Shown here: in pieces, positions 2,655 to 61,439 of the stretch
Position numbering within the stretch: position 1 is the stretch's first letter
How the letters are laid out: each line of letters begins with the position of its first letter
From: Octopus sinensis
Taxonomy: Eukaryota
Length of the DNA: 64,000 bases
Assembly: GCF_006345805.1 (NCBI RefSeq)
Contig: NC_043022.1
Location: 12,648,001 to 12,712,000, forward strand
Reading direction: 5' to 3'
The notes under the pieces: model-generated
Told to the model about the DNA's origin: nothing
What the model saw: only the letters and a program-made list of their open reading frames with translations
The model's database searches: none
Position numbers and translations under genes: made by a program

Positions 2655-3056
2655 TCTTTACTCTTTACTCTTTTACTTGTTTCAGTCATTTGACTGTGGC
2701 CATGCTGGAGCACTGCCTTTAATCGAGCAACTCGACCCCGGGACTTATTCTTTTGTAAGCCCAGTACTTATTCTATCGGTCTCTTTTGCCAAACCGCTAA
2801 GTAACGGGGACATAAACACACTAGCATCGGTTGTCAAGCAATGCTAGGGGGACAAATACAGACACACAAACACACACACGCATACATATATATATACAAC
2901 GGGCTTCTTTCAGTTTCCGTCTACCAAATCCACTCACAAGGTTTTGGTCGGCCCAAGGCTATAGTAGAAGACACTTGCCCAAGGTGCCACGCAGTGGGAC
3001 TGAACCCGGAACCATGTGGTTGGTAAACAAGCTACTTACCACACAGCCACTGCTGC
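2655..3056 (-). mobile_element. Octopus-type tRNA-derived SINE, family A, near full length
   Basis: Minus strand: tRNA-like head GTGGCTGTGTGGTAAG...GGTTCAGTCCCA, body GGCACCTTGGGCAAGTGTCTTCTACTATAGC, central (TA/CA) tract, 3' CAGTCAAATGACTGAAACAAGTAAAAGAG; near-identical copies elsewhere in the window. Confidence 0.9.
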
Positions 3057-3606
3057 TGTAAGGCACACTCTTCTATCTTTACTATCTCTTCTCTTGTTCT
3101 TCATCCTTTCTGGGTTTTCTCTCCCACCCTTCCCTATTCTTCTCCTCTCCTTTTCACCGTTCCCTCTCTCTCACTCCTCCTCACCTCTCATCGCTGACAC
3201 GTGACTAAAGAGAATCTATCTTTCTGACAACTACCTTCGTAAAGACAAAACGTGCTTATACCGTCTCCTTCATAAGCTCATCTTCCTAGCATTCATAATA
3301 ATTTTTCTATCATCTTGGCTTAACAGCCCTCACTGTTTGTTTTTACTGTTTTGTTCTCACTGTCCTGTTCTTGTTACCACTTTCACCCTCCTCAAAAATT
3401 TTATTTAATTTGCCTTACAGGAAGGACTGTTTCAACGAAGTTGCGTCTTGTCTTTGCCTTCGAAACGTGGAGTAGATAAAACAGGGACAACTGAAGAAGG
3501 GGAATATTCTTTATGTTGTACGTCTTGTTTCCCTGTTTGTTTTTTTCATTGTTCGAAAAAAGTTTGTTTCTATGTTTTTGTTTCTCATTGTGTTCAACAT
3601 TTTTTT
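3057..3606 (+). mobile_element. Probable Penelope-like element terminal-repeat remnant
   Basis: Pyrimidine-rich block followed by two decayed hammerhead-like cores (CTGACAA...AAAACGT at ~3222; CAACGAAG...CTTCGAAACGT at ~3433) and a T-rich end similar in style to 40599-40785. Confidence 0.35.
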
Positions 3607-4584: not shown

Positions 4585-5011
4585 TTCTAATTTTGGCACA
4601 AGGCCAGCAATTTTAAAAAGAGGGGACAAGTCAATTACATCAACGCCAGTACTTGACTGCTATTTTATTTCATCATTCCTAAAAGGATGAAAGGCAAAGT
4701 TGACTTCAGCAGGATTTGAACTCAGAACATACTGAGCCAGAAAGAATGCTGCTTAGTATTTTTTCCAATGTGTTCACAATTCTGCCAGATCACTGCCTTA
4801 ATAATAATAATCCTTAGGCACAAGACCTGAAATTTAGGGGAAGGGAATAGTCGATTACATCAACCCTAGTGTTTCTCTGGTACTTAATTTGTCGACCCTG
4901 AAAGGATGGAATGCAAAGTCGACCTTGGCGGAATTTGAACTAAATGTAATGACGAGTGAATATCACTAAGCATTTCGTCTACCGTGCTAATTCTGCCAGC
5001 TTGCTGCTTTC

Positions 5012-5075
<64 letters not shown>

Positions 5076-5192
5076 GTAATAATAATAATAATTGTAATAA
5101 TAATAATAATAGTAATGATAATAATAATTGTAATAATAATAATTGTAATAATAATAATAATAATTGTAATAATAATAATAATAGTAATAATA

Positions 5193-5224
<32 letters not shown>

Positions 5225-5449
5225 GTAATGATAATAATAATTGTAATAATAATAATTGTAATAATAATAATAATAATTGTAATAATAATAATAATAGTAA
5301 TAATAATAATAATAGTAATAATAATAATAATAATAATAATAGTAATGATAATAATAATTGTAATAATAATAATTGTAATAATAATAATAATAATTGTAAT
5401 AATAATAATAATAATTGTAATAATAATAATAATAGTAATAATAATAATA

Positions 5450-5480
<31 letters not shown>

Positions 5481-6505
5481 TAGTAATGATAATAATAATT
5501 GTAATAATAATAATTGTAATAATAATAATAATAATTGTAATAATAATAATAGTAATAATATAATAATAGTAATAATGATAATAAATTCTGAATCAGACAC
5601 AAGGCCAGCAATTTTGAGGAGAGAAGGAGTAGGTGATACCATTTTTATCAACTTCCAATAGATGAAAGGCAAAATTGACTTTAGTGTCATTTGAAATCTG
5701 AACATAAAGAACCAGAAGAAATACAAGGTAGTTTTTTTGACAGTCATGATTTTACCAGTTCAACACCTTTTTATAATAATAATGGTTTCAAATTTGGTAC
5801 AAGGCCAGCAATCTTAGGGGTAGGTGGTCAGTCAAATACATCAAACCCAGTGCTTTACTGCTATTTATTTTATCAACTTTGAAAAGATGATAGACAATGT
5901 TGACCTCAGTGGAATTTGAACTTGAGACATGGCAATAAATACTGCTAAGCATTTTGTCTGGTGCAGTAACAATTCTACCAGCTTGACATCTTAATAGTAA
6001 TTTCAAATTTAGACACAAGGCCAGCTATTTCAGGAGATGGGTAAAGTGAATTACATCCAGATGGGTGCTTAACTGATATTTATTTTATCAATTCTGAAAC
6101 AATGGAAGGTAAAGCTGACCTCAGCAGAATTTGAACTCAGAACATAAAGGCAGATGAAATGCTGCTAAGCATTTTATCCAGCATGCTAATGATTCTGCCA
6201 GCTCACTTAATAATAGTAATGATGATAATAATAATAATGGTTTCAAACTTTGACACAAATTCAGCAATTTTAGGAAAGGGCTTAAGTTGACACCATCAAC
6301 CCCAGTACTTTATATTTTGTCCAAAGTTCTAAACATTCTGCCAAGGCACAAGACAAGAAATTTTGGAAATGAAGTTAGTCAAATCAAACCCAGTACTTGA
6401 CTGGTACTTCATTTTAATTGACACCCCACCCCAAAGGATGAAAAACAAAGTTAAAATTGGAGGATTTGAGCTAAGAATATAAAAAGCCTCAACAAAATAT
6501 AAAAA
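4585..6505 (-). mobile_element. Head-to-tail array of six SINE family B copies (Meta-domain-like central region), separated by (AAT)n
   Basis: Copies at ~4585-4799, 4811-5010, 5583-5770, 5783-5991, 6001-6207, 6239-6505. Each reads on the minus strand GGCAGAAT..TTAGCA...TTCTGAGTTCAAAT...TTTGCCTTTCATCCTTT.GGGGTCGATAAAATAAGTACCAG...CTGGCCTTGTGCCAAAATTTGAAA(ATT)n. The Meta-domain label is from memory of MetaSINE/Sauria SINE cores. Confidence 0.85.
5012..5582. repeat. ~570-bp compound (AAT)n microsatellite with higher-order structure
   Basis: AAT interrupted by AGT, GAT and TGT variants; the block AGTAATGATA recurs at ~5111, 5224, 5341 and 5482. Confidence 0.95.
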
Positions 6506-7350
6506 GTCTACAACTCTTTCCTGCAATCAGACCTAGACACAATGCAGCAATGGATCACAGACTGGCAACTGAAACTGGCTGTGGACAAGTGTACCACCAT
6601 GCATTTTGGGAGAAAAAACCCTGCGTCCACATACTCCCTCCACAACTCTGATATCAAGAAATCCTCTTGCGAGCGTGACCTAGGCATCACTGTCAGCAGT
6701 GATTTGCGTTGGACAAAGCATATCTCTAAAATTGTCAGGAAGGCCGAGGGTGTCTTGGCATCACTCAGCAAGACTTTTGTTAGCCGCTCTCCAGCCATCT
6801 ATTTAAAACTGTATATAGCTATGGTACGACCACACTTGGAATTCGCATCATCAGTTTGGAATCCCTATCTTGCTCAGAACATTGACCTCCTGGAATCTGT
6901 TCAGAGACGTGCAACCAAATGCATACCCTCCATCAGACACCTACCATATTCTGAGCACCTTGTTTCCCTGGGCATGGATTCACTGAAGCTCCGGCGTCTG
7001 GCGACGGACTTGGTAAACACCCACAAGGTTATCAACCACCTCACCAACAACAACACTGAACACCTTTTTGATCTCCATGTGTCTAACACACGTGGACATG
7101 CCTACAAAGTCAGAAAACAACACAGCTCCCATGACTTTCGGAAACATTTTTTCACGCTCAGAGTTGCTGAAGCATGGAATAAACTGCCTGCGTCAGTTGT
7201 TGACTGCCATGACACTGCATCCTTTAAGGCCCTCATGCTTTCCGAAATCCGCCGAAACTACACCTGATTATATATACACTTTAGATGAGTTGTAGTGCAC
7301 CTGAGCACTGTACACAATTATTATTATTATTATTATTATTATATTATTAT
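6506..7350 (+). mobile_element. 5'-truncated CR1/L2-group LINE: RT C-terminal region, short 3'UTR, (ATT)n tail
   Basis: Uninterrupted 241-aa ORF with KCTTMHFG, ERDLGITVSSDL, LYIAMVRPHLEFASSVW, LESVQRRATK, LRRLATDL, TRGH, FFTLRVAEAWNKLP motifs; ends GTGCACCTGAGCACTGTACACAA(TTA)n. Confidence 0.93.
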
Positions 7351-14211: not shown

Positions 14212-14614
14212 TACTCTCTTTTACTTGTTTCAGTCATTTTGACTGCGGCCATGCTGGAGCACTGCTTTTAGTTGAGCAAATCGACCCCGGGACTTATTCT
14301 TTGTAAGCCCAGTACTTATTCTATCGGTCTCTTTTGCTGAACCGCTAAGTGACGGGGACGTAAACACACCAGCATCGGTTGTCAAGCAATGCTAGAGGGA
14401 CAAACACAGACACACAAACATATACACACACATACATACATATATATATACGACAGGCTTCTTTCAGTTTCTGTCCACCAAATCCACTCACAAGGATTTG
14501 GTTGGCCCGAGGCTATAGCAGAAGACACTTGCCCAAGATGCCACGCAGTGGGACTGAACCCGGAACCATGTGGTTGGTTAGCAAGCTACTTACCACACAG
14601 CGACTCCTGCGCCT
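14212..14614 (-). mobile_element. SINE family A, full length
   Basis: Same sequence as 2655-3056, with intact head AGGCGCAGGAGT. Confidence 0.92.
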
Positions 14615-14844
14615 ATGTGTGAAAATATATAAGAAGTTGATTGTTATGGTCAGTCAGAGAGTGATCATTGGTTTCACACCTATAAAGCACTTAGCCATGT
14701 AGGTAACTTGTCAGACTTAAATGGCCATATGCACATAACCTCTCTGACAGGCCATGACAATCAACTTTCTAAAAATATATTACTGCTCTAGTGTTTTAGA
14801 ATGTGCTTCGTTTTTGGATATATGAACTGACGATATACATATAT

Positions 14845-24469: not shown

Positions 24470-25142
24470 ATATAATAATAATGAAATTATTGTATACAGT
24501 GCTCAGGTGCACCACAACTTGTCAAAAGTGCATATAAAGTACATGCAGTAATGTTCAAATGTCTGAAGAGTGTATGAGTCAGATACATGCTTGCATGTGT
24601 ATGGAGGGGAAGAGAAGATCAGGTGTAGTGTTGGCGAATCTCAGAAAGCATGGAAGTTCTGAAGGATGCAGTGCTCCGACAACTAACAACAGATGCCGGC
24701 AGTTTGTTCCATGCTTCAGCAACTCTCAGCGTGAAAAAATGTTTCCTAAAGTCATAGGAGCTGTGCTGTTTTCTGACTTTGTAAATATGTCCACGGGTGT
24801 TAGATGGGTGGAGTTTGAAAAGGTGCTCAGAGTTATTGTTTGTAAGATGGTAGATAATTTTATGGGTGGCTGCCAGGCGTCAGAGTTTCAATGTGTCCAT
24901 GCCCAGGGAAGTAAGGCGTTCAGAATATGGCAAATGCCTGATGGAGAGTATTCTTTTGGTTGCACGTCGCTGAATGGCTTCCAGATGATTGATATCCTGG
25001 GTAAGATAGGGGTTCCAGACCGGTGATGCAAATTCCAGGTGAGGTCTTACCATAGCTATATAAAGCCACAGATAGATAGTCAGAGAGCGGCTCACAAAGG
25101 ATTTGGTGAGTGATACCAAGACACCCTCAGCCTTCTTGACAG
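24470..25142 (-). mobile_element. Second 5'-truncated CR1/L2-group LINE with longer 3'UTR
   Basis: LYIAMVRPHLEFASPVWNPYL...QRRATKR; one in-frame stop; same terminal GTGCACCTGAGCACTGTATACAA + (ATT)n. Confidence 0.92.
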
Positions 25143-26441
25143 TATCTGAAGGATGAGCTGTGATGATAAAACCATCAGACTGTTGATGCTACATTTTTTG
25201 GTCTACTTCCCCCTTATTCTTTTCTTCTCATTGTCACACTTATAAACACTCCATATTCAAGTCATTAGCATCACAAATTGATGTAGTTATGGACACATGT
25301 TTACAGTTCAAGATGTATGTTTATATATTTTGGTGAGTGAGTGTGTAAGTACATATAGGTGTGTGTGTATATATATGTAATGTCATGTTGAACACATTCA
25401 AGTGCATTCAGACATGAGGTGACCTACCATAACAGAAATAGTCCCTGGGAGGAAATTCTGCTCCGAGATGTGTGCAAAGACATTAGGCTATGAATGATGT
25501 CATTGGATTATAGGACACAAGCCTTTCTGTATTGTCTATCTCTAGTTCATCTCTTTACACACTATTCATAGATATCTTCTTAACATTCTAACCTTCTAAG
25601 CATATCAGCTGACCTCCATTCCATATACTTTTTGCTACACTCGTGTTTCATCATTCTGTCTCACAGATTGCTGGAAGCCATTTTGAACAAATAATTTGAT
25701 GAATGCAGAGTGGCTGTTGCACTTGTACCAAGTACAACCAGCATTGTCCTAGTATGAAACATTAAGTTATATTTTGTTCCTTGTTAACTGCATAAAGATC
25801 ACTAAACATACACACATGTATAATATATGCATATTCATATATATCTATATACACATGCACACAAACATCTATATGTGTATATAGATACATTTAGATGCAC
25901 ATCTATGTGTGTGTGTGTGTACATATACATATGTGTATAAAAGGATAAACACATCCAAATACTGACAGTGATAGATGATAAAGGTAATGACAAAAAGCAA
26001 TATGATATATAAATCAATAAATAAATATATATAAACAGCCAATGAAGAAGGAGTACAAGGAATGAAGCTGTAAGATGATGAGTAAATCTGTTACCTCTCT
26101 CATCTGAAATCCAAGCATTTTGGACTGGTAATGAGAAAGTAAAAAAAAAAAAAAAAAAGAAGAAGGAAAAAAAACAAACACGCCCAATTACAAATGTGAA
26201 TGGTTAGATATGAGGTCTGTAACAACATTCTGATCAAGCAATTAGAAATTTAGTTCAATTTCTTTTAATTTATTTATTTCATTTTCTGGCAGAGGAAAAG
26301 TGGTATTTTTTTGTTTTGCTTTTTTTTTTAGTCTGAAAATTCAAATTGATAAAAATGAAAATGTTTCCATCATCGTCTCAGTTTGTTAGAACTTCAACAG
26401 ACACATGCTGCCAAGGAGACCTGCGGAAGCTAACATTCGTT

Positions 26442-36405: not shown

Positions 36406-38260
36406 AGAGAGAGAGGAGGGAGAAAGTGAGAATAAAAAGCAGAAAAGCATAAATTTCACAAATAGTCCATAATTCAAATACACTCATCATTCCTGTCTCA
36501 CTCTCTTATATATGTGTGTGTGGATGTGAATATATGTGTGTGTGTATGTATATATATATATGTTACGTGCATAAATGTGTGTGTGTATGTATGTACATAT
36601 ATGTTTGTATATTCTTTGTTCAGCAATATGCAACAGAGGAGATAGATTGAGAAATTACGTCAGAGCTGTACAGATCCAACCAGACTTGATTCTACTGTGC
36701 CATCACCATCATCATCTCCTCCTCCACCATCATGACCACTGCCGCCAAACCTTGTATGGAATTGCCGATTTCACAATGATTAACTTGGAATTAATATTTG
36801 CTGTTCTCAATAGAATCTTCAGATCTTAGGTATTGGATAGCAATAACAACAACAAAGGCAGAAGACAAGTGATACAATAACAATAGAAGAACAAGAAATG
36901 AAAGAAGGAAATAAGAACTAAAGGAAAGAAAGAACAAAGGTGATAAGAAAGGATGCAAGAGAAAGAAGAATTTGCTTAATCCCTTAGTAACAGTGGATTT
37001 TTATGCAATCTCTTTGTGTAATCAATCATTGATGAAATCCTAAAACCAGTCCAGTTGATCCCTCTTTTCATGCCCACAAAGCTATTGTACATAAAAATAA
37101 GGTGTTTCCATCTATATCCCCCTACACACACACAGTGTTAGCTAAAATCTACAGCAGTAGTATACCATATTATACTATTTATATTATATGTACATATGGT
37201 GAACTCATTAGCACAAATGACAAACCGTCCAGTAGACACTGTAAAGTGGTTCACATTGGGAAAGGTATCCAGCAGCAGGAACTATGCCAAAGCTGACATT
37301 GGTGCTTGACACAGCCCTACATCTCACCAGATCATGTCAAACTGTCCAATCCATAGAAAACAAACATTATGCGATGATATATATGTGTGTAAGTACATAC
37401 ACATGCACATATACATACGTGCTGTCAATTTGCTGCCCAATATGCTTGAGAACACAGGAGGAACTAAACTGAATTCAAACACACACACACACACTGTCTC
37501 CCAGTTTAGGTCACCCATCTACCCAAATATCCACCCAGATTAATCAATATTGTTGTTGATTTATATCATGAGGTGTTTTAAGTTATAGATTAATTTATGT
37601 GACACATCATTTCTGTTGGTTTAACTATTTCAAAATATCTGTGTGTTCAAATGTATGTGTGTGTGTGTGTGAAGGGGTGGGTGGGGATATACACTTGTAG
37701 GTGGATGTGTATTAGACAAGGTGACAGTGGGTAGGTATGTGTGTGAGTGGTGATCCAGGTAAAGTATGTATATGTGTTTATTTATATATATATATATACA
37801 CACACAAATTTATGATACACATACAGAGATGTTATATGCAAACAGATTATATTTATGCATACATAGATACATTGATAGACACAAAAATGTATGATAGACA
37901 AGAGATAAAAGACAAACACACAAGTTTTCTGTTATAACACATAAAATGTTTGTTTATATATTTCATGTAAAATGTTTCAGATTTTACTACGTCAATACTA
38001 AATACACACACTCAGTTTCATATATATATACATATATGCACACAAACATTTATGTGTGTGTGTATACATATTGTGACAAGTTATAAAATTAAGCAAAAAG
38101 CTTAAAATTAATATTGACAACATTTCAAAGTCACATGACCTGATCTTTTTAATCTCAAACAGAAATAAAACACGGTAGGGTGGTATCAGCAGAGAGTGTA
38201 AGACTGAAATGGAGAGATGGTTAGGTGGAGGTGTGTGCAACTTTGTAATTTCAGCTTTTT

Positions 38261-38529
38261 ACCTCGTTAAATCTGAACATTTTCAACAAGTCAAAGAAGG
38301 AAATTAGTTTCTGCCTGTATTATTACCTCGTTAAATCTGAACAGTTTCAACAAATTACAGAAAGAGAAATTAGTTTTTTGCCTGAGTTATTAGCTTGTTA
38401 AATGTGAACATTTTGAACAAATTACAGAAAGAGAAAATTGTTTTTCTACCTGTGCTATTATTTTGTTAAATGTGAACATTTTCAACAAGTCATGAGGAGA
38501 GAGAAAAATCAGCTTAACCTGAGTTATTT
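38261..38529. repeat. Four-unit 64-70-bp minisatellite
   Basis: Units start at 38261, 38325, 38392 and 38460; consensus ~GTTAAAT(C/G)TGAACATTTTCAACAA.T.A.AGAAAGAGAAA.TAGTTTTT.CCTG.GTTATT. Confidence 0.9.
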
Positions 38530-44948: not shown

Positions 44949-46436
44949 ATTAACATTTTGATGACATTTCAAGGAAAGTGTAATGACGGTTGCTTCTGAT
45001 AGGAAGGAAGTGCTTGAGAATTCTACACCCACAACCCTCCCAGGGACTGTGAGTGGAGAAGATGAATGGATATTTTGAAAGAAGGTTTCAATTAAAATTA
45101 TTTTTTAAACCAGAACAATGTAACAGAAATGACCAGAGATGCTCTCAGATGGGTTGGTGTCAGAAAGCCTCAACTATTTTTATTCTATTAAATAACAATT
45201 AAAATCTCCATTTAACACTAAGAACTGCTTACATCTCTGCAGTAATATAAAACACACAAAAATATTACAATAACATGCTTTGTTTTTACTATCAGAAATT
45301 CATTCATAAAACTGGTTTACTACTAAAGATCACGGCAGCAGTTATAGTCATTATTATCACTAATTCATTCATAAAACTTTCATGGTACTATTGAGGATAA
45401 TTCAAGCGTAATCGTGAGGGGAAACAGTTTCTCAAGATACTAGAAACAGTAGTCAAATCAAACCCTAGTTTCTTATACAAAAGAGATGGACACATTGAAT
45501 GTATCCTAAAAAGACATAATAAACACCTTTGATAACAAGTCAGCTGAATACTAGAAGCAGCAACCAAATCACACCCTACTGTCTTACACAATGGAAAAGA
45601 TATGGTATGTGATATATTTTCAAGTCATTCTTAAGAAGACAGGATGGCTACATCTGGGACGCCTTTGATAATAAATAGATCAACTGAGTGAGTGCAAACC
45701 AGGGACTAAACAACATCCATGGAATTGTTTGTTACAGTAACCAATTTTCAATTTCCCATATCAATATTGCCCCAGGATGAACCATATAGAGAAACTGGTA
45801 ACTTTGCTAATCAGCTTCAATCCAGCAAAATTCAAATCAAAAGACATTCCAACCATGACTAGCAGACTGTTAAGAGGTGTCTCACACTACATCATTTCAT
45901 GTGCACTTGCCATTCTTTTTTTAAGAGAGTAGAGTCTGAGGAAGATTTGGCCACCATTTCTAAAAGATCAGATGACAACATAAAGCCATCGTTACTGACC
46001 CAAGTAACTTGAAGCGATTTTATCAAAGATCTTATCACACACTGAAGATCAATAAATAAAACATTGACCTGAATTTTTCCACCTCTTCACACACAGCTGT
46101 GTTGTAAGACATCTTCTTCCTATCCATATGGTTCCAGGATCAGTCCCACTGCAAGCAAACTTTGGCAAGTGTTTTCTACAATAGCTTCAGGCCAACCAAA
46201 GCCTTGTGAATGGTAGACAGAAACTGAAAGAAGCCCATCATACATACATGTGTGTGTGTGTCTTTTTGTCCCCCACCATTGCTTGACAGCTAGTGTTGGT
46301 GTGTTTATGTCCTTTTAACTTAACAGTTTGGCAAAAACAGATTAATAGAATAAATACTGGGCTTTAAAAAAAAGGTAATAAGTGCTGGGATTGATTCGAC
46401 TAAGATTCTTCAGGGTGGCACTTCACCATGGCAGCA

Positions 46437-46809
46437 GGCTGTGTGGTAAGTAGCTTGTTTACCAACCACATGGTTCCGGGTTCAGTCCCACTGTGTGACA
46501 CCTTGGGCAAGTGTCTTCTACTATAGCCTCGGGCCAACCCAAACCTTGTGAATGGATTTGGTAGACGGAAACTGAAAGAAGCCCGTTGTATATATATATA
46601 TGTATGCGTGTGTGTCTGTGTTTGTCCCCCTAGCATTTCTTGACAACCAATGCTGGTGTGTTTATATCCCCATTACTTAGCGGTTCGGCAAAAGAGACCA
46701 ATAGAATAAGTACTGGGCTTACAAAAGAATAAGTCCTGGGGTCGAGTTGCTCGATTAAAGGTGGTGCTCCAGCATGGCTGCAGTCAAATGACTGAAACGA
46801 GTAAAGAGT
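46437..46809 (+). mobile_element. SINE family A inserted at the 3' end of an older family A copy (46110-46436); another head fragment at 46820-46890
   Basis: Sequence match to family A. Confidence 0.9.
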
Positions 46810-47533: not shown

Positions 47534-47697
47534 AATGGGCTTCTATCAGTTTCAGTCTACCTGTTTCATCAAGGAGGTATTGTTTGACTCACAGCTACAG
47601 CAGAAGACACTTGCCCAAGGTGCCACACAATGAGCATGGACCCCAAAACCATGTGGTTACAAAGTAAACTCCATATCCATACAGCCATGTTTTTGCA
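47534..47697 (-). mobile_element. SINE family A 5' fragment, head-to-head with the next copy
   Basis: AGAAGACACTTGCCCAAGGTGCCACAC...AACCATGTGGTT. Confidence 0.8.
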
Positions 47698-47720
47698 TGT
47701 GTGTGTATGTATGTATTTAC

Positions 47721-48180
47721 GAACCACATGGTTCCGGGTTCAGTCCCACTGCGTGGCACCTTGGGCAAGTGTCTTCTACTATAGCCTTGAGCCGACCAAA
47801 GCCTTGTGAGTGGATTTGGTAGATGGAAACTGAAAGAAGCCCGTCGTAGGAAGGGCATCCAGCTGTAGAAACATTGCCAGATCAGACTGGAGCCTGGTGC
47901 AGCCTTCTGGCTTCCCAGACCCCAGTTGAACCGTCCAACCCATGCTAGCATGGAAAACGGACGCTAAACGATGACGATGATGTATGTGTATGTGTGTCTG
48001 TCTTTGTCCCCACCAACATCGCTTGACAACCGATGCTGGTGTGTTTACATCCCCGTAACTTAGCAGTTCAGCAAAAAGAGACCGATAGATAAGTACTAGG
48101 CTTACAAAGAATAAGTCCTGGGGTCGATTTGCTCGACTAAAGGCGGTGCTCCAGCATGGCCACAGTCAAATGAGTGAAAA
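47721..48180 (+). mobile_element. SINE family A interrupted by an RTE-tail insertion (47848-47981)
   Basis: ...GAAGCCCGTCGT|AGGAAGGGCATCC...CTAAACGATGACGATGAT|GTATGTGTATG... then the SINE 3' half. Confidence 0.9.
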
Positions 48181-48227: not shown

Positions 48228-48905
48228 ATCAAAGTGGCAAATTAGAGAATTGGATAAAATAGTCTGCAGTATTTGTTCTGACACTGAGTGTTCTGAGTTC
48301 AAATCCTACTTTATTTTATCAACCCCAAAATGACGAAAGACAAAGGTGACCGGGAGGAAATTCAAACTCAAATTCTAAAGAGTCAGAAAGAAAAACACAA
48401 GGCATTTTTGTCTGACATGAATGTTTCTGCTAATCCAGCACCTTAATAAAAGAAAAAGAATTATAATCCTTTCTAAGCACAAGGTCTGAAATTTTGAGGG
48501 ATTAGGCTAGTCAATTACATCAACCTCAGTGCTCAATTGGGACTTATTTCATCCATCCCAAAATGATGAAAGGTAAAGTCAACCTTAGCGGGATTTGAAC
48601 TTAGAATGTAGAGAGGAGGAACTAACACGCAAAGCATTTTTATAATACAACAATTCTGCCAACACACCACAAATAACAACAACAATAATAATAATGGCTT
48701 CAAATTTTGGCAGAAGGCCAGCAGTTTTGGAGGGGGATAGCCGATGATATTGACCCCAGTATTCAACTGGTACCTATTTTAACAACCCCAAGAAGATGAA
48801 AGGCAAAATCGACCTCAGCAGAATTTGAACTCAGAACATAGAGATGGATGAAATGCTGCTAAGCATTTCACCTGGCATGCTAATGGTTCCGTCACCTCAC
48901 CACTT
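48228..48905 (-). mobile_element. Second stack of SINE family B copies (48310-48445, 48467-48669, 48696-48905; inverted head at 48228-48308); another copy at 49918-50131
   Basis: Same motifs as 4585-6505, separated by AAT/AAC tracts. Confidence 0.8.
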
Positions 48906-54688: not shown

Positions 54689-54931
54689 ATATATATATAT
54701 ACATATATATATACATATATATATATATAATATATATATATATATTATATATATATATACACATATATATACACGTATATACAATGGGCTTCTTTCAGTT
54801 TCCGTCTACCAAATCCACTCACAAGGCTTTGGTCGGCCCGAGGCTATAGTAGAAGACACTTGCCCAAGGTGCCACGCAGTGGGACTGAACCCGGAACCAT
54901 GTGGTTGGTAAACAAGCTACTTACCACACAG
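54252..54931 (-). mobile_element. SINE family A with central microsatellite expanded to ~300 bp (54480-54780)
   Basis: Both SINE halves near-identical to 2655-3056; the centre is a TA/TACA array. Confidence 0.92.
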
Positions 54932-55025
54932 ATATATGGAAATATAACATATATCATAAAATTAAATATACATACATGCATAAGTATGCACGTGTATATA
55001 TACAATATGTGTTTGTGTGTGTGTG

Positions 55026-55867
55026 TCAGGGGAAGCAAAAAACTGTCCGCACTTTCACCATGACATATCTTTATTATTGTCACACTGCCTTCTGCTGCAC
55101 CTGTGTGCTTATAGTTGGAAGTATTGTGGTCATGCCGTCAAAGTTTGATCCTGAGAGTACCATTTTATTTCAGGGGTTTACAGTGTAAGCATGGCCACTC
55201 CACTAGCAAGAAGAACAATGAGCGGAATAGTCAGAGGAGATGATATGTGGGTTCATCATTATGAGGTAGGATCCAAAAGATAGAGAGTATGGAGTGGAAA
55301 CATCCTGGCTTGCCAGCGATGAACAATTCAAGACTCGGGAAAGGTGATGCTAATTCTTTTTTGGAACTCAAAAACACCTATACTGGAAGACTACCTGGAA
55401 AAGGGGTCTACGATCAACAGTGCAAGACACAGTACCTTTGCTGGCCAACAAACTGAAGCACCAATTCACACCAAACGCCAAAGCCTGTTGTTGAAGAAAG
55501 TTTTGTTGTTGCATGGCAATGCACAGCCACACATGGCCACCCAGACTGTTAAAACCATTAACTAACTGGGTTTTGAGGTGTTGGAACACCCTGCCTACAG
55601 TCCAGATCTCACCCCTTCCAACTGTCATATCTTTGGACTGCTCAAAGATGGTTTATAAGGTCATTGACTTCCTACAGATGAAGATGTGAAAGAAATGGTT
55701 GCATGACCAACTAAATACCTTCTTGGGGGGAATACACAAGCTTGTGGACCACTGGACCATTGAAAAGGAAGAAAACTACATAGAAAAGTTATTTACTTGT
55801 TTATGCCCTGCTTCTGTGTAAATACATTGAAAAAATAAGAGTGTGTATAAATTTTGATTCCCCCTCA
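55026..55867 (+). mobile_element. mariner (DD34D) element lacking the HTH region, catalytic part decayed
   Basis: GDDMWVHHY, GKVMLILFWN, LLLHGNAQPH, LEHPAYSPDLTPS; degenerate TIRs AGGGGAA.CAAAA. Confidence 0.88.
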
Positions 55868-57949: not shown

Positions 57950-58145
57950 AATCATGTGTATATATATATATAATCATGTGTGTATATATATATATATATA
58001 TACACACACACATGATATACATATACACACACATACACACACAAATATATAGACATACAGATGTATATACATATATACACACACACATGATATACATATA
58101 CACACACATACACACACAAATATATAGACATACAGATGTATATAC

Positions 58146-58178
<33 letters not shown>

Positions 58179-58212
58179 CACATACACACTATATATAAAC
58201 ATGCACACTATA

Positions 58213-58260
<48 letters not shown>

Positions 58261-58410
58261 ATATACACACACTATATATATTTATACATACACTATATGT
58301 ACACACACAAAATATATACATGCACACACACTACATATAAATATATACTACATATACACACACATGTGCACTACATATACACTATGCGTATACACACACA
58401 CACACACAAG
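57950..58410. repeat. Compound TA/CA microsatellite containing a ~72-bp tandem duplication (~58000-58150)
   Basis: CATGATATACATATACACACACATACACACACAAATATATAGACATACAGATGTATATACATATA occurs twice. Confidence 0.9.
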
Positions 58411-58610
58411 TTGTAACTAGTGAGAGAAAGTGGATAAGAGTACTTCACACTATGGTAGCATGTAATAATTTTCAGATGAATCAGTTGCTACAGAGATTCC
58501 CATGAGGGAAATCCATAGCAACACCTCAAACTGATTTAGTTGAAACAAACTCTGTGTGTGTGTGTGTGTCTGTACATGTGTACACATACACATATATGTG
58601 TGTATGTATG

Positions 58611-58645
<35 letters not shown>

Positions 58646-58654
58646 GACGTATTT

Positions 58655-59403
58655 TGCATTAGCTGCACACTCGTATAAATATGTAGATATTGAAGCAAAT
58701 GCAGAAGTCCCTGACACAACAAGAGGTGCAGATTTGACATCAGAAAAGATGCAACAAGCTGCAGAACAGTGTGCATAATAAAATAAATATATTGGTGCAC
58801 ATTGGAAAAATGTGCTGGAGTGGTGCATGACCGGTCATTTTGCTGCATAACTGAGTTGTGAACAGCAGGATAGATGCATCTGCATATCCAGCAGATGAAG
58901 TTGCCTTGATGGTGGCTGTGTGCAGTGATGCACTGGGGCACAGCGAGAAAGGCTGCAAGGAAATTCACAAGGCAGTGTTGCAGAGGGGTGAACATTGTTA
59001 TGAAGTAAATAGTTGTGATGTCTGAATGCACGTTGAAATGCACACAGTTGGCACCATGAAGAGATGCAAGTTGTCCTCCGGGGAAAATGTGCATACTCAT
59101 GTCCTTCTGAATAAGAAGAGCAGGAGAGTGCAGGAACCTGTGCATATTGAAGTATGCACAACGGGTGCTCAGTGGAGTGTTGCAAAACACTCGTCTGTAG
59201 GTCTTGGTGCACAGCAGTATGTAAAACATGCACTTATTTAGTTGCATTATGCTGTATGGTGCACATTAAGTCCACAGCACAGGTGCACACTGAAGTGCAA
59301 GAATCAAGGATTGTAGAAGCAGCTGCAATGGTGAAATGCAGTAAACTGTGCATACTTAAGCAGGTGCACATGTGAGTGCAGATTAAAGGTGCAAAAAAGT
59401 GCA
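58655..59403. repeat. Cryptic TGCA-lattice sequence (degenerate ~12-bp minisatellite-like)
   Basis: 37 TGCA tetramers by hand count; the most frequent spacing is 12 nt, with many at 24-27. Confidence 0.75.
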
Positions 59404-60857
59404 GAAGCCCAATTCATGCTGGGTCATGATGGTTCTGTGGATTGGCCGAACATTATATTGATGATGATGATGATGATGGTGAGAAGAAGAGCAAAAGGAA
59501 GAGGAGGAGGAGGAGGCAGAGCATGCACAGTATGGTGGTGTTTGTCAGCTCTGACCCAGCAGACCTTTGATCAAAGATTCCAGGTGTGCCATCCCAGGTT
59601 TTTTTTTCTTCATTTCTATTTCACTGATATCCTAGACCAACATTATTATCCTACCTGTCCTTCCTTTACGAGTGTGGTTTAAAAGAAAGTTGGCTGCTGT
59701 TTCTAGCCGGTCTAGCAACCATATAGAAACTAGACGCTCCCTATTTGGTGATGTTAATGATGATCGTGAGGAGAGAAAGGAATATAATGGTGGCAGTTAT
59801 TATAATGAATGTAAGGATGAGGGGTAGTCTGAGAATGTGATGGTGGAGGAGGAGCTTGGAAGAGGGAGGTGGAGGAGGCAGAGGAGGGAGTGACAATGAT
59901 GATGATTCTTTTTTTTCTTTTTTTGTAAAGTATGTATGGAAGGAAGGAAGTGCTTCAATATCAATAATGCTGGCCTGGACACACAGACAGAATAAACAGC
60001 AACAATGATCAAGAAAATGCCCAGAAAAAGGAACAACAGTGTAAACCGACAACATTATCCACCACCACCACCACCACCACAATCTAACACCATCATCATC
60101 ATCATCACATGCATGTAACCATATGTCACAAGCTTCTTATGCAGTCATTTGACGTGCTCACCAGAAATAGCAGCCAAATTGTTCTCCACCCCTTCTTCCT
60201 TCTACAAAAAGGACACATGACGCTATGTGGCCCTTGAATATTCACACAGCCTGATAAAAAAAAAATTGAAAATTGGAAGAAGAAAAAAACAATCAACAGA
60301 CAGGGCAGTCATGCATGGAACGACTGTAATGATAAGTCTTGCTTTGCTCAGTCATAGCTGACCTGGGGCTAAATAAAACCATTAACAACAATTGTCCTGG
60401 TGGTCAACATCCACCACCACTGCTGTTGCTGCCTTTCACAGTGCAACCAGGTTCAACTGTGGTCTTCCAGCCTGGTAGAAATAGCAGTCAAATTTCCCTC
60501 AATTTACATCCTTACTGTCTACAAAGACCAAGAAAAAAATGGAGGATGGATGGCTGGCTGGGGTGACACATGTAGTCCTAGATACAGCCACATGCAAAGA
60601 AGGACAGAAGTGGGGAGGGGGGGAGGGAGGGACAAAGGTCACTGATGGAATGTCTTTAATCATATATCTGGTCGGTTGGTCAGAGTACACCTGATGTGTG
60701 TGTGTGTGTCTGTGTGTGTGTACAGGGGAGGGGCATCTACAAACACCATATTGTTGTCAATATCACTTCTAGGAAAGACACAACAGCCACTAACTTCACA
60801 ATATCATCTCCTCACTCCACCACGACTCCATAAATATGAAAATATATAACTACTGTG

Positions 60858-60940: not shown

Positions 60941-61439
60941 TGGGGTTTCAAATTTTGGCATAAGGCCAGCTGTTTTGAGGGGAGGGGGTAAGTCTGTTAC
61001 ATTAATGCCAGTGCTCAGCTGGTACCTATTTTATCGACCCCCGATAGGATGAAAGATAGAGCTGACCTTGGTAGAATTTGAAATTAGAAAAGTAAAAATC
61101 CAGAAGAAATACCAGCCCTGATCAAGCAGACATTCAAACACCAAAAAAAAAAAAAAAAGAATTCCATCCGTGACCATCCTGTATTTCTAACAAGTATATA
61201 ATATAGATGACATTATCCCATTTATGCCTTTTATTAAGGCAACAGATGTTGGTTTGAGGAGAGGGCACACAGAGTCGGATGCTATATTATTGCAGGGCGA
61301 ATGGCCACAACATAGAGGCTTCTTCACAGCTGTCATTATTGCTGGTGTTGATGTTGTTGTTGTTGTTGTTTTGCTCCTTCTCTGAAGGTTCTAATTGAAC
61401 AGACCTATGATCAAACAGCCATTCCAGTACATGACCATC

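Follow-up and report, generated by a model that had tools for sequence, protein, structure and literature searches.

A directional, quasi-periodic array of TGCA cores with randomised spacers in Octopus sinensis

The stretch of Octopus sinensis DNA analysed here, a window of 64 kb, is AT-rich and densely packed with repeats, among them microsatellites, SINE-like elements and pieces of reverse transcriptase and transposase genes (Table 1). Two copies of a jockey-like reverse transcriptase C-terminal fragment are present. The forward-strand copy shares 72-81% protein identity with jockey-like reverse transcriptases of O. sinensis, O. vulgaris and O. bimaculoides and returned 55 matches, including Octopus proteins and contigs from ENA, Logan and JGI, and the reverse-strand copy is 91% identical at the DNA level to a copy in O. 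vulgaris. Many of the repeats in the window align at 70-91% to two loci, in O. sinensis and O. vulgaris (41 kb in total), and these loci also hold copies of a dispersed SINE-like element that is recognisable by its recurring pseudo-translation ...RRHLPKVPRSGTEPGTMW... A short dispersed repeat family is represented by copies that are 72-75% identical, and a very long (AAT)n microsatellite (approximately 191 units, 83% matches) yields poly-Y, poly-L and poly-I pseudo-ORFs of 210-245 aa. A further tandem repeat comprises 3.5 copies of a 67-bp unit (85% matches). Neither an Rfam family nor a tRNA was found in the window.

The feature of main interest, a lattice of TGCA tetranucleotides, lies towards the right end of this repeat-rich DNA. 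Just upstream of it is a CA/TA-type microsatellite with a 75-bp higher-order unit (2.5 copies, 94% identity), and 3 kb upstream is a fragment of a mariner-type transposase (Pfam Transposase_1, E=2.4e-7), which was the only significant Pfam match among 10 neighbouring open frames. No gene was identified near the lattice, the surroundings of which consist of transposon debris and microsatellites.

Table 1. Coordinates, within the 64-kb window, of the TGCA lattice, its parts and the features around it.
Feature	Position	Strand	Remarks
SINE-like element, copies	2805-3058; 14353-14699; 46403-46672 (-); 47598-47963 (-); 54690-55060; others		Dispersed
Short dispersed repeat family, copies	60944-61089; 4585-4727; 5784-5923; 6001-6142; 48492-48836		
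(AAT)n microsatellite	5012-5584		
Jockey-like reverse transcriptase, C-terminal fragment	6503-7264	+	
Jockey-like reverse transcriptase, C-terminal fragment	24622-25188	-	
Tandem repeat, 67-bp unit	38259-38488		
Mariner-type transposase fragment	55323-55562	+	
CA/TA-type microsatellite	58000-58347		
Left boundary, (TG)n then (TA)n microsatellite	58553-58645	n/a	Adjoins the first core
Antisense open frame	58615-59265	-	217 codons; treated as a compositional by-product, not a gene
TGCA lattice, whole	58655-59403	+	37 intact cores, ~61 unit slots; purine-rich, C-poor, GC 0.41-0.50
Left sub-array	58655-59019	+	16 cores, sparser; period ~12 bp (R=0.58)
Right sub-array	59020-59403	+	21 cores in 29 slots; phase-coherent 13-bp period
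Two-core module, copy 1 (TGCAGnAAnCTGTGCATAnTnAAG)	58760-58783	+	71% identical to copy 2
Two-core module, copy 2	59129-59152	+	Reference copy
Two-core module, copy 3	59337-59360	+	83% identical to copy 2
Perfect 12-bp palindrome	58827-58838		Between two cores
Hairpin potential of adjacent units, TGTGCATA ttgaag TATGCACA	59139-59160	+	8-bp stem
Right flank, (TGA)8 and (AGG)7 simple repeats	59459-59521	n/a	55 bp past the last core

The lattice is a non-coding, directional and quasi-periodic array that is unique in the window, and in it TGCA has been retained and the spacers are randomised. TGCA occurs 37 times within 58655-59400, against approximately 2.6 expected from the regional base composition (mean 2.65, maximum 10 in 5000 mononucleotide shuffles) and 3.85 expected from the rest of the window. 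This 9.6-fold excess (z=16.9) agrees with a preliminary description of the locus, made from the sequence alone, which had counted 37 TGCA at roughly tenfold excess. A k-mer comparison, proposed in that description and covering all 4- and 5-mers of the whole window, puts TGCA at the lattice ahead of every other local outlier in non-simple sequence (log10 P = -23), and longer motifs are enriched above TGCA itself (GTGCA, 17 against 0.9 expected; GGTGCA, 8 against 0.12). The next-densest 750-bp windows hold 10-13 TGCA and correspond to (CATG)n-type microsatellites or scattered sites. Generalising the motif to WGCW, which would be reminiscent of switch regions, fails, as AGCT (3), TGCT (4) and AGCA (8) are without comparable enrichment.

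Both edges of the lattice are sharp, with the (TG)n(TA)n microsatellite before the first core and 120 bp free of TGCA past the last. A TGCA-density scan and self-BLAST upheld the earlier observation of sharp edges and of no other copy in the 64-kb window. The forward strand of the lattice is 59% A+G and 17% C, with 37 of its 126 C located in the cores. GC content and GC skew (+0.2 to +0.4) are both above those of the surroundings, and the positive skew extends beyond the right edge to approximately 59574.

The tetranucleotide counts also lead us to reject the earlier suggestion of a CpG-deamination residue, in which a CGCG-, TGCG- or CGCA-rich insert would have decayed to TGCA, and we regard this origin as scarcely credible. 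CpG observed/expected is low (0.20 in the lattice, 0.26 in the window), and TGCG and CGCA are both absent from the lattice, as this reading would have it. However, decay of CGCG predicts that TGTG, CACA and CATG should be about as frequent as TGCA, whereas 9, 13 and 5 were observed against 37, and TGCG or CGCA parents predict a 1:1 ratio with TGTG or CACA. Eight of the 13 CACA sit inside TGCACA.

Nearest-neighbour spacings between cores fall at 12 bp (six times), 13 bp (twice), 14 bp (twice) and 24-28 bp (11 times), with a few at 36-40 and 48 bp. The best period is 12.7 bp by the neighbour-spacing statistic (p=0.0002 against random placement, maximised over periods), consistent with the spacing clusters at 12-13 and 24-27 nt that had been described before, and unit length varies from 10 to 17 bp. 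In the right half the cores keep phase at 13 bp (R=0.76, p ~5e-6, spectral z=6.0), whereas no such coherence is seen at 12 bp (R=0.17). Taken over the whole array, a Rayleigh test of global phase did not reach significance, owing to drift of the register and to the different periods of the halves, and periodicity was judged by the neighbour-spacing and half-array tests in its place. The units all run head-to-tail and share a weak directional consensus, A-G-R-TGCA-Y-A, with G at core position -2 in 20 of 37 cores (C in one) and A at position +5 in 22 of 37 (C in two). The same asymmetry of orientation is seen in TGAA, which occurs 12 times in the lattice against a single TTCA. Extended six-base palindromes at the core are not enriched (8 against approximately 10 expected), and without such a preference a symmetric dimer site is not indicated.

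These periods bear on a possible coding origin. The preliminary description had raised a decayed tetrapeptide repeat, which is contradicted by the 13-bp period of the right half, where 3-bp periodicity is absent in the spectral test, by the spread of TGCA over all three codon phases (17/10/10), by the 9-17 stops in the forward frames and by a lack of homologues. A decayed or orphan coding sequence, be it this repeat or the 217-codon antisense frame, is very unlikely in our estimate. In its favour are the 12-bp period of the left half, with weak 3-periodicity (z=2.5), and the length of the antisense frame, which exceeds that in lattice- or dinucleotide-preserving shuffles (p ~0.008). However, a second antisense frame has only two stops and is open for 132 codons, which argues that openness reflects composition rather than coding. 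The 217-codon frame is open because TTA, CTA and TCA are scarce on the forward strand (14 in total against 23.6 in dinucleotide-preserving shuffles), a depletion of pyrimidine-pyrimidine-A. No Pfam family was detected, an exact look-up of the frame among proteins gave no match, and no homologue was found in 5.8 billion clusters and 1.84 billion representative proteins (word-indexed search and exhaustive phmmer). We attribute the frame to composition, apart from a small residue that this does not explain.

A metal-responsive function had also been proposed, based on seven matches to the metal-response element (MRE) TGCRCNC and on a presumed neighbouring zinc-peptidase gene. The seven matches were recovered, three on the forward and four on the reverse strand, compared to 0.6 per 750 bp across the whole window. 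In this the lattice is like the MRE clusters of metallothionein-type promoters, where several TGCRCNC cores of either orientation also lie within a few hundred bp of each other. Unlike in those clusters, the count may be explained by TGCA density, since 3.7 +/- 1.8 matches are expected when the 37 TGCA are fixed and the spacers shuffled (p=0.07). All seven matches are TGCAC-type, none has the GC-rich extended MRE flank, and the remaining 30 of the 37 cores cannot be MREs. The zinc-peptidase neighbour did not materialise: a six-frame HExxH scan and Pfam searches of the 10 nearby open frames identified no HExxH-bearing, peptidase or metallothionein-like exon in the window, nor any other adjacent metal-related gene, and among long open frames HExxH occurs just once, as HEYAH, within the antisense frame of the lattice itself. 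An array of MREs bound by MTF-1 and regulating a nearby zinc-peptidase gene is very improbable in our estimate.

Outside the cores the units scarcely resemble one another. Mean pairwise identity of the flanks (14 positions) is 0.292 compared to 0.262 for composition-matched random sequence, in line with the dissimilar spacers reported earlier, and is flat with distance (0.30 for neighbouring and 0.29 for distant units). Internal direct similarity is barely above a lattice-preserving null. The states of the 61 slots are bimodal, with 37 intact, approximately 10 carrying one mismatch (approximately 5 by chance) and 14 carrying at least two, whereas decay at one common rate, with 61% of slots still intact, would predict approximately 33% with one mismatch and 6% worse. 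The near-misses that had been noticed between cores find weak support, as 10 of the 24 empty slots are one mismatch away from TGCA against 5.2 expected (p=0.02). A search for higher-order repeats recovered a single module of 24-40 bp in three copies, with a top internal match of 14 against a null maximum of 13.5. This two-core module, TGCAGnAAnCTGTGCATAnTnAAG, is the sole multi-unit module that recurs. Tandem Repeats Finder (TRF), at a minimum score of 30, called no array inside the lattice. Wrap-around profile alignment to 12-, 13- or 14-mers either overfitted (approximately 100 indels) or lost register, and units were therefore assigned from spacing.

The lattice is like a minisatellite (VNTR) in its head-to-tail units of 12-13 bp, its sharp edges, its block duplications and its common short core, and unlike one in that the units differ beyond the core (29% identity, where chance gives 26%), vary in length and escape detection by TRF. 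The short head-to-tail period of a minisatellite is thus present, and similarity over the whole length of the unit is not. We found nothing relevant in the literature on octopus minisatellites or on TGCA palindromic minisatellites.

We simulated the decay of a perfect array of 58 units of a 13-mer under uniform replacement. Retaining 37 TGCA allows approximately 14% of sites to be replaced, at which point the flanks would still be approximately 88% consensus (1.26 bits), compared to the 44% (0.14 bits) observed. Conversely, degenerate flanks need at least 78% replacement, which leaves approximately four cores (maximum 10 in 200 runs). The combination of 37 intact cores and degenerate flanks is therefore incompatible with uniform decay, and either there is, or once was, constraint on the core, or the spacers differed from the start. 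What is rejected in this way is the simplest neutral model alone, in which a homogeneous array decays uniformly. The survival of TGCA amid randomised spacers suggests, but does not prove, that the core has been kept for a reason. The preliminary description had proposed an ancient minisatellite in which the palindromic core alone is preserved, as a binding array with metal-response character; the decayed short-period array with a surviving core stands, uniform neutral decay being rejected, and the metal-response identity is not supported. Selection as a homotypic binding array is an inference.

Based on these observations, we tentatively favour a core under constraint, the simplest reason for which would be that it serves as a repeated docking site for a protein and so provides avidity, while giving this reading somewhat less than an even chance. 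The array would have originated through minisatellite-like tandem duplication of a 12-13-bp unit, which would explain its uniform orientation, period and sharp edges, and a few later block duplications would be visible in the three copies of the two-core module. The core would then have been held by constraint as the spacers drifted to saturation, and cores that were lost would have decayed freely afterwards. The bimodal slot states fit such site-by-site constraint with occasional loss. Each TGCA could represent a putative docking site for a sequence-specific DNA-binding factor, and the stretch as a whole a high-avidity homotypic array of an architectural, insulator-like or repeat-binding kind. 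However, a 4-bp core holds very little information for a specific protein, and a docking site predicts neither the folding-energy excess described below nor the over-long antisense frame.

Among known arrays, the closest in layout is the gypsy insulator, in which 12 Su(Hw) sites sharing YRYTGCATAYYY are distributed over 340 bp with variable spacers between them (PMC2374998). The lattice resembles it in extending over a few hundred bp with many TGCA-containing cores and short variable spacers, and Su(Hw) is known to act via the multiplicity of its sites (PMC2374998). The 12-bp consensus YRYTGCATAYYY itself is matched by 0 of the 37 cores on either strand (best partial match 11/12; TGCATA in six), so the resemblance is one of layout and not of membership. 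Unlike the gypsy array, which has AT-rich spacers, the lattice has purine-rich spacers, a spacing of 12-13 bp and no LTR-retrotransposon context, and it does not occupy the 5' untranslated location of a gypsy-type LTR element, as no LTR or terminal inverted-repeat pair flanks it. A further difference is that Su(Hw) has been described in arthropods (Drosophila and Anopheles) and is not known outside them.

Neutral cryptic simplicity, or a heterogeneous minisatellite that does nothing for the organism, is doubtful in our judgement, although we rank it nearly as likely as constraint on the core. Under this scenario the array would have been built by numerous short duplications, arising through slippage or microhomology and registering on the palindrome (R)TGCA(Y), in which purines and pyrimidines alternate. 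With only core-bearing units being re-copied, the core would be renewed mechanically and the spacers would drift. Cryptically simple sequence, as defined by Tautz, Trick and Dover (1986; cited in PMC1634856), combines a skewed base composition with a local excess of one short motif whose copies are not in strict tandem, and the lattice, as one scrambled over-represented motif of biased composition in which TRF calls no array, matches this definition. It also adjoins microsatellites in a genome rich in TG, CA and TA simple repeats, and TGCA arises at the junctions of TG and CA. Its palindromic cores have hairpin potential that would favour slippage, a few block duplications are present, and no nearby gene or function is visible. 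The local motif excess of cryptic simplicity is thus found, but not the neighbour similarity that is the sign of slippage: ongoing slippage should make neighbouring units more alike, and they are no more alike than distant ones. In addition, the slot states are bimodal rather than graded, and in a static neutral array as many as 37 cores could not persist beside saturated spacers. Unlike cryptically simple sequence, the lattice has a motif that is oriented and regularly spaced, with no trace of recent slippage.

If the cores are conserved between octopus species and the spacers are not, the lattice would be a clean natural homotypic site array, the grammar of which (core, spacing and orientation) could be read from one locus, and it would help to identify the protein that binds it, in a lineage where hardly any cis-regulatory elements have been characterised. 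Without such conservation, the lattice would be an unusually tidy case of cryptic simplicity, and a caution that MRE-type matches in such arrays are by-products.

An origin within a multi-copy octopus transposable element or satellite, of which the lattice would be an internal or subterminal region with TGCA serving the element through binding of a transposase or a host zinc-finger protein, is unlikely in our view but carries some weight. The subterminal repeats of Ac or En/Spm are a parallel for short binding repeats that serve the element, and transposon ends and untranslated regions typically carry short binding motifs in arrays, as gypsy does, which counts for such an origin. The window is moreover dominated by transposon fragments and by SINE-like repeats common to O. 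sinensis and O. vulgaris. However, besides being single-copy in the window, the lattice has no counterpart in the two O. sinensis and O. vulgaris loci (41 kb), in which TGCA is densest at a (CATG)n microsatellite, and no terminal inverted or direct repeats or LTRs were found to bracket it. Scans of JGI metagenome contigs with exact patterns from the two-core module and the right flank gave 0 matches. The antisense frame is without relatives in the protein collections searched, compared to the 55 matches of the reverse transcriptase fragment, which is weak evidence against a high copy number.

More improbable again, we consider, is an undescribed cis-element in which an array of approximately 60 slots of a 4-bp palindrome, selected in octopods, would nucleate the cooperative binding of an architectural or repeat-binding protein or, alternatively, form a multi-hairpin single-stranded DNA or RNA. 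A spacing of 12-13 bp corresponds to approximately 1.2 helical turns, so successive sites would spiral around the helix. The C2H2 zinc-finger family is reportedly greatly expanded in the published Octopus bimaculoides genome and would be a candidate class of binder.

With regard to single-strand structure, both strands of the lattice fold more stably than dinucleotide-preserving shuffles (z=-3.9 for the forward and -3.8 for the reverse strand). The excess persists when TGCA is fixed in the null (z=-5.1 and -3.2, respectively) and when two bases on either side of TGCA are fixed as well (z=-3.7 and -2.5). Against a lattice-preserving null, neither discrete inverted repeats nor perfect local hairpins are in excess. 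Part of the folding excess derives from core extensions with alternating purines and pyrimidines, as TGTGCA (six occurrences) pairs with TGCACA (eight occurrences), for instance in the 8-bp stem at 59139-59160. The excess holds over all nulls tried, and no discrete inverted repeat accounts for it. The perfect 12-bp palindrome ATGACCGGTCAT, which lies between two cores of the left sub-array, contains one of the few CpGs of the region.
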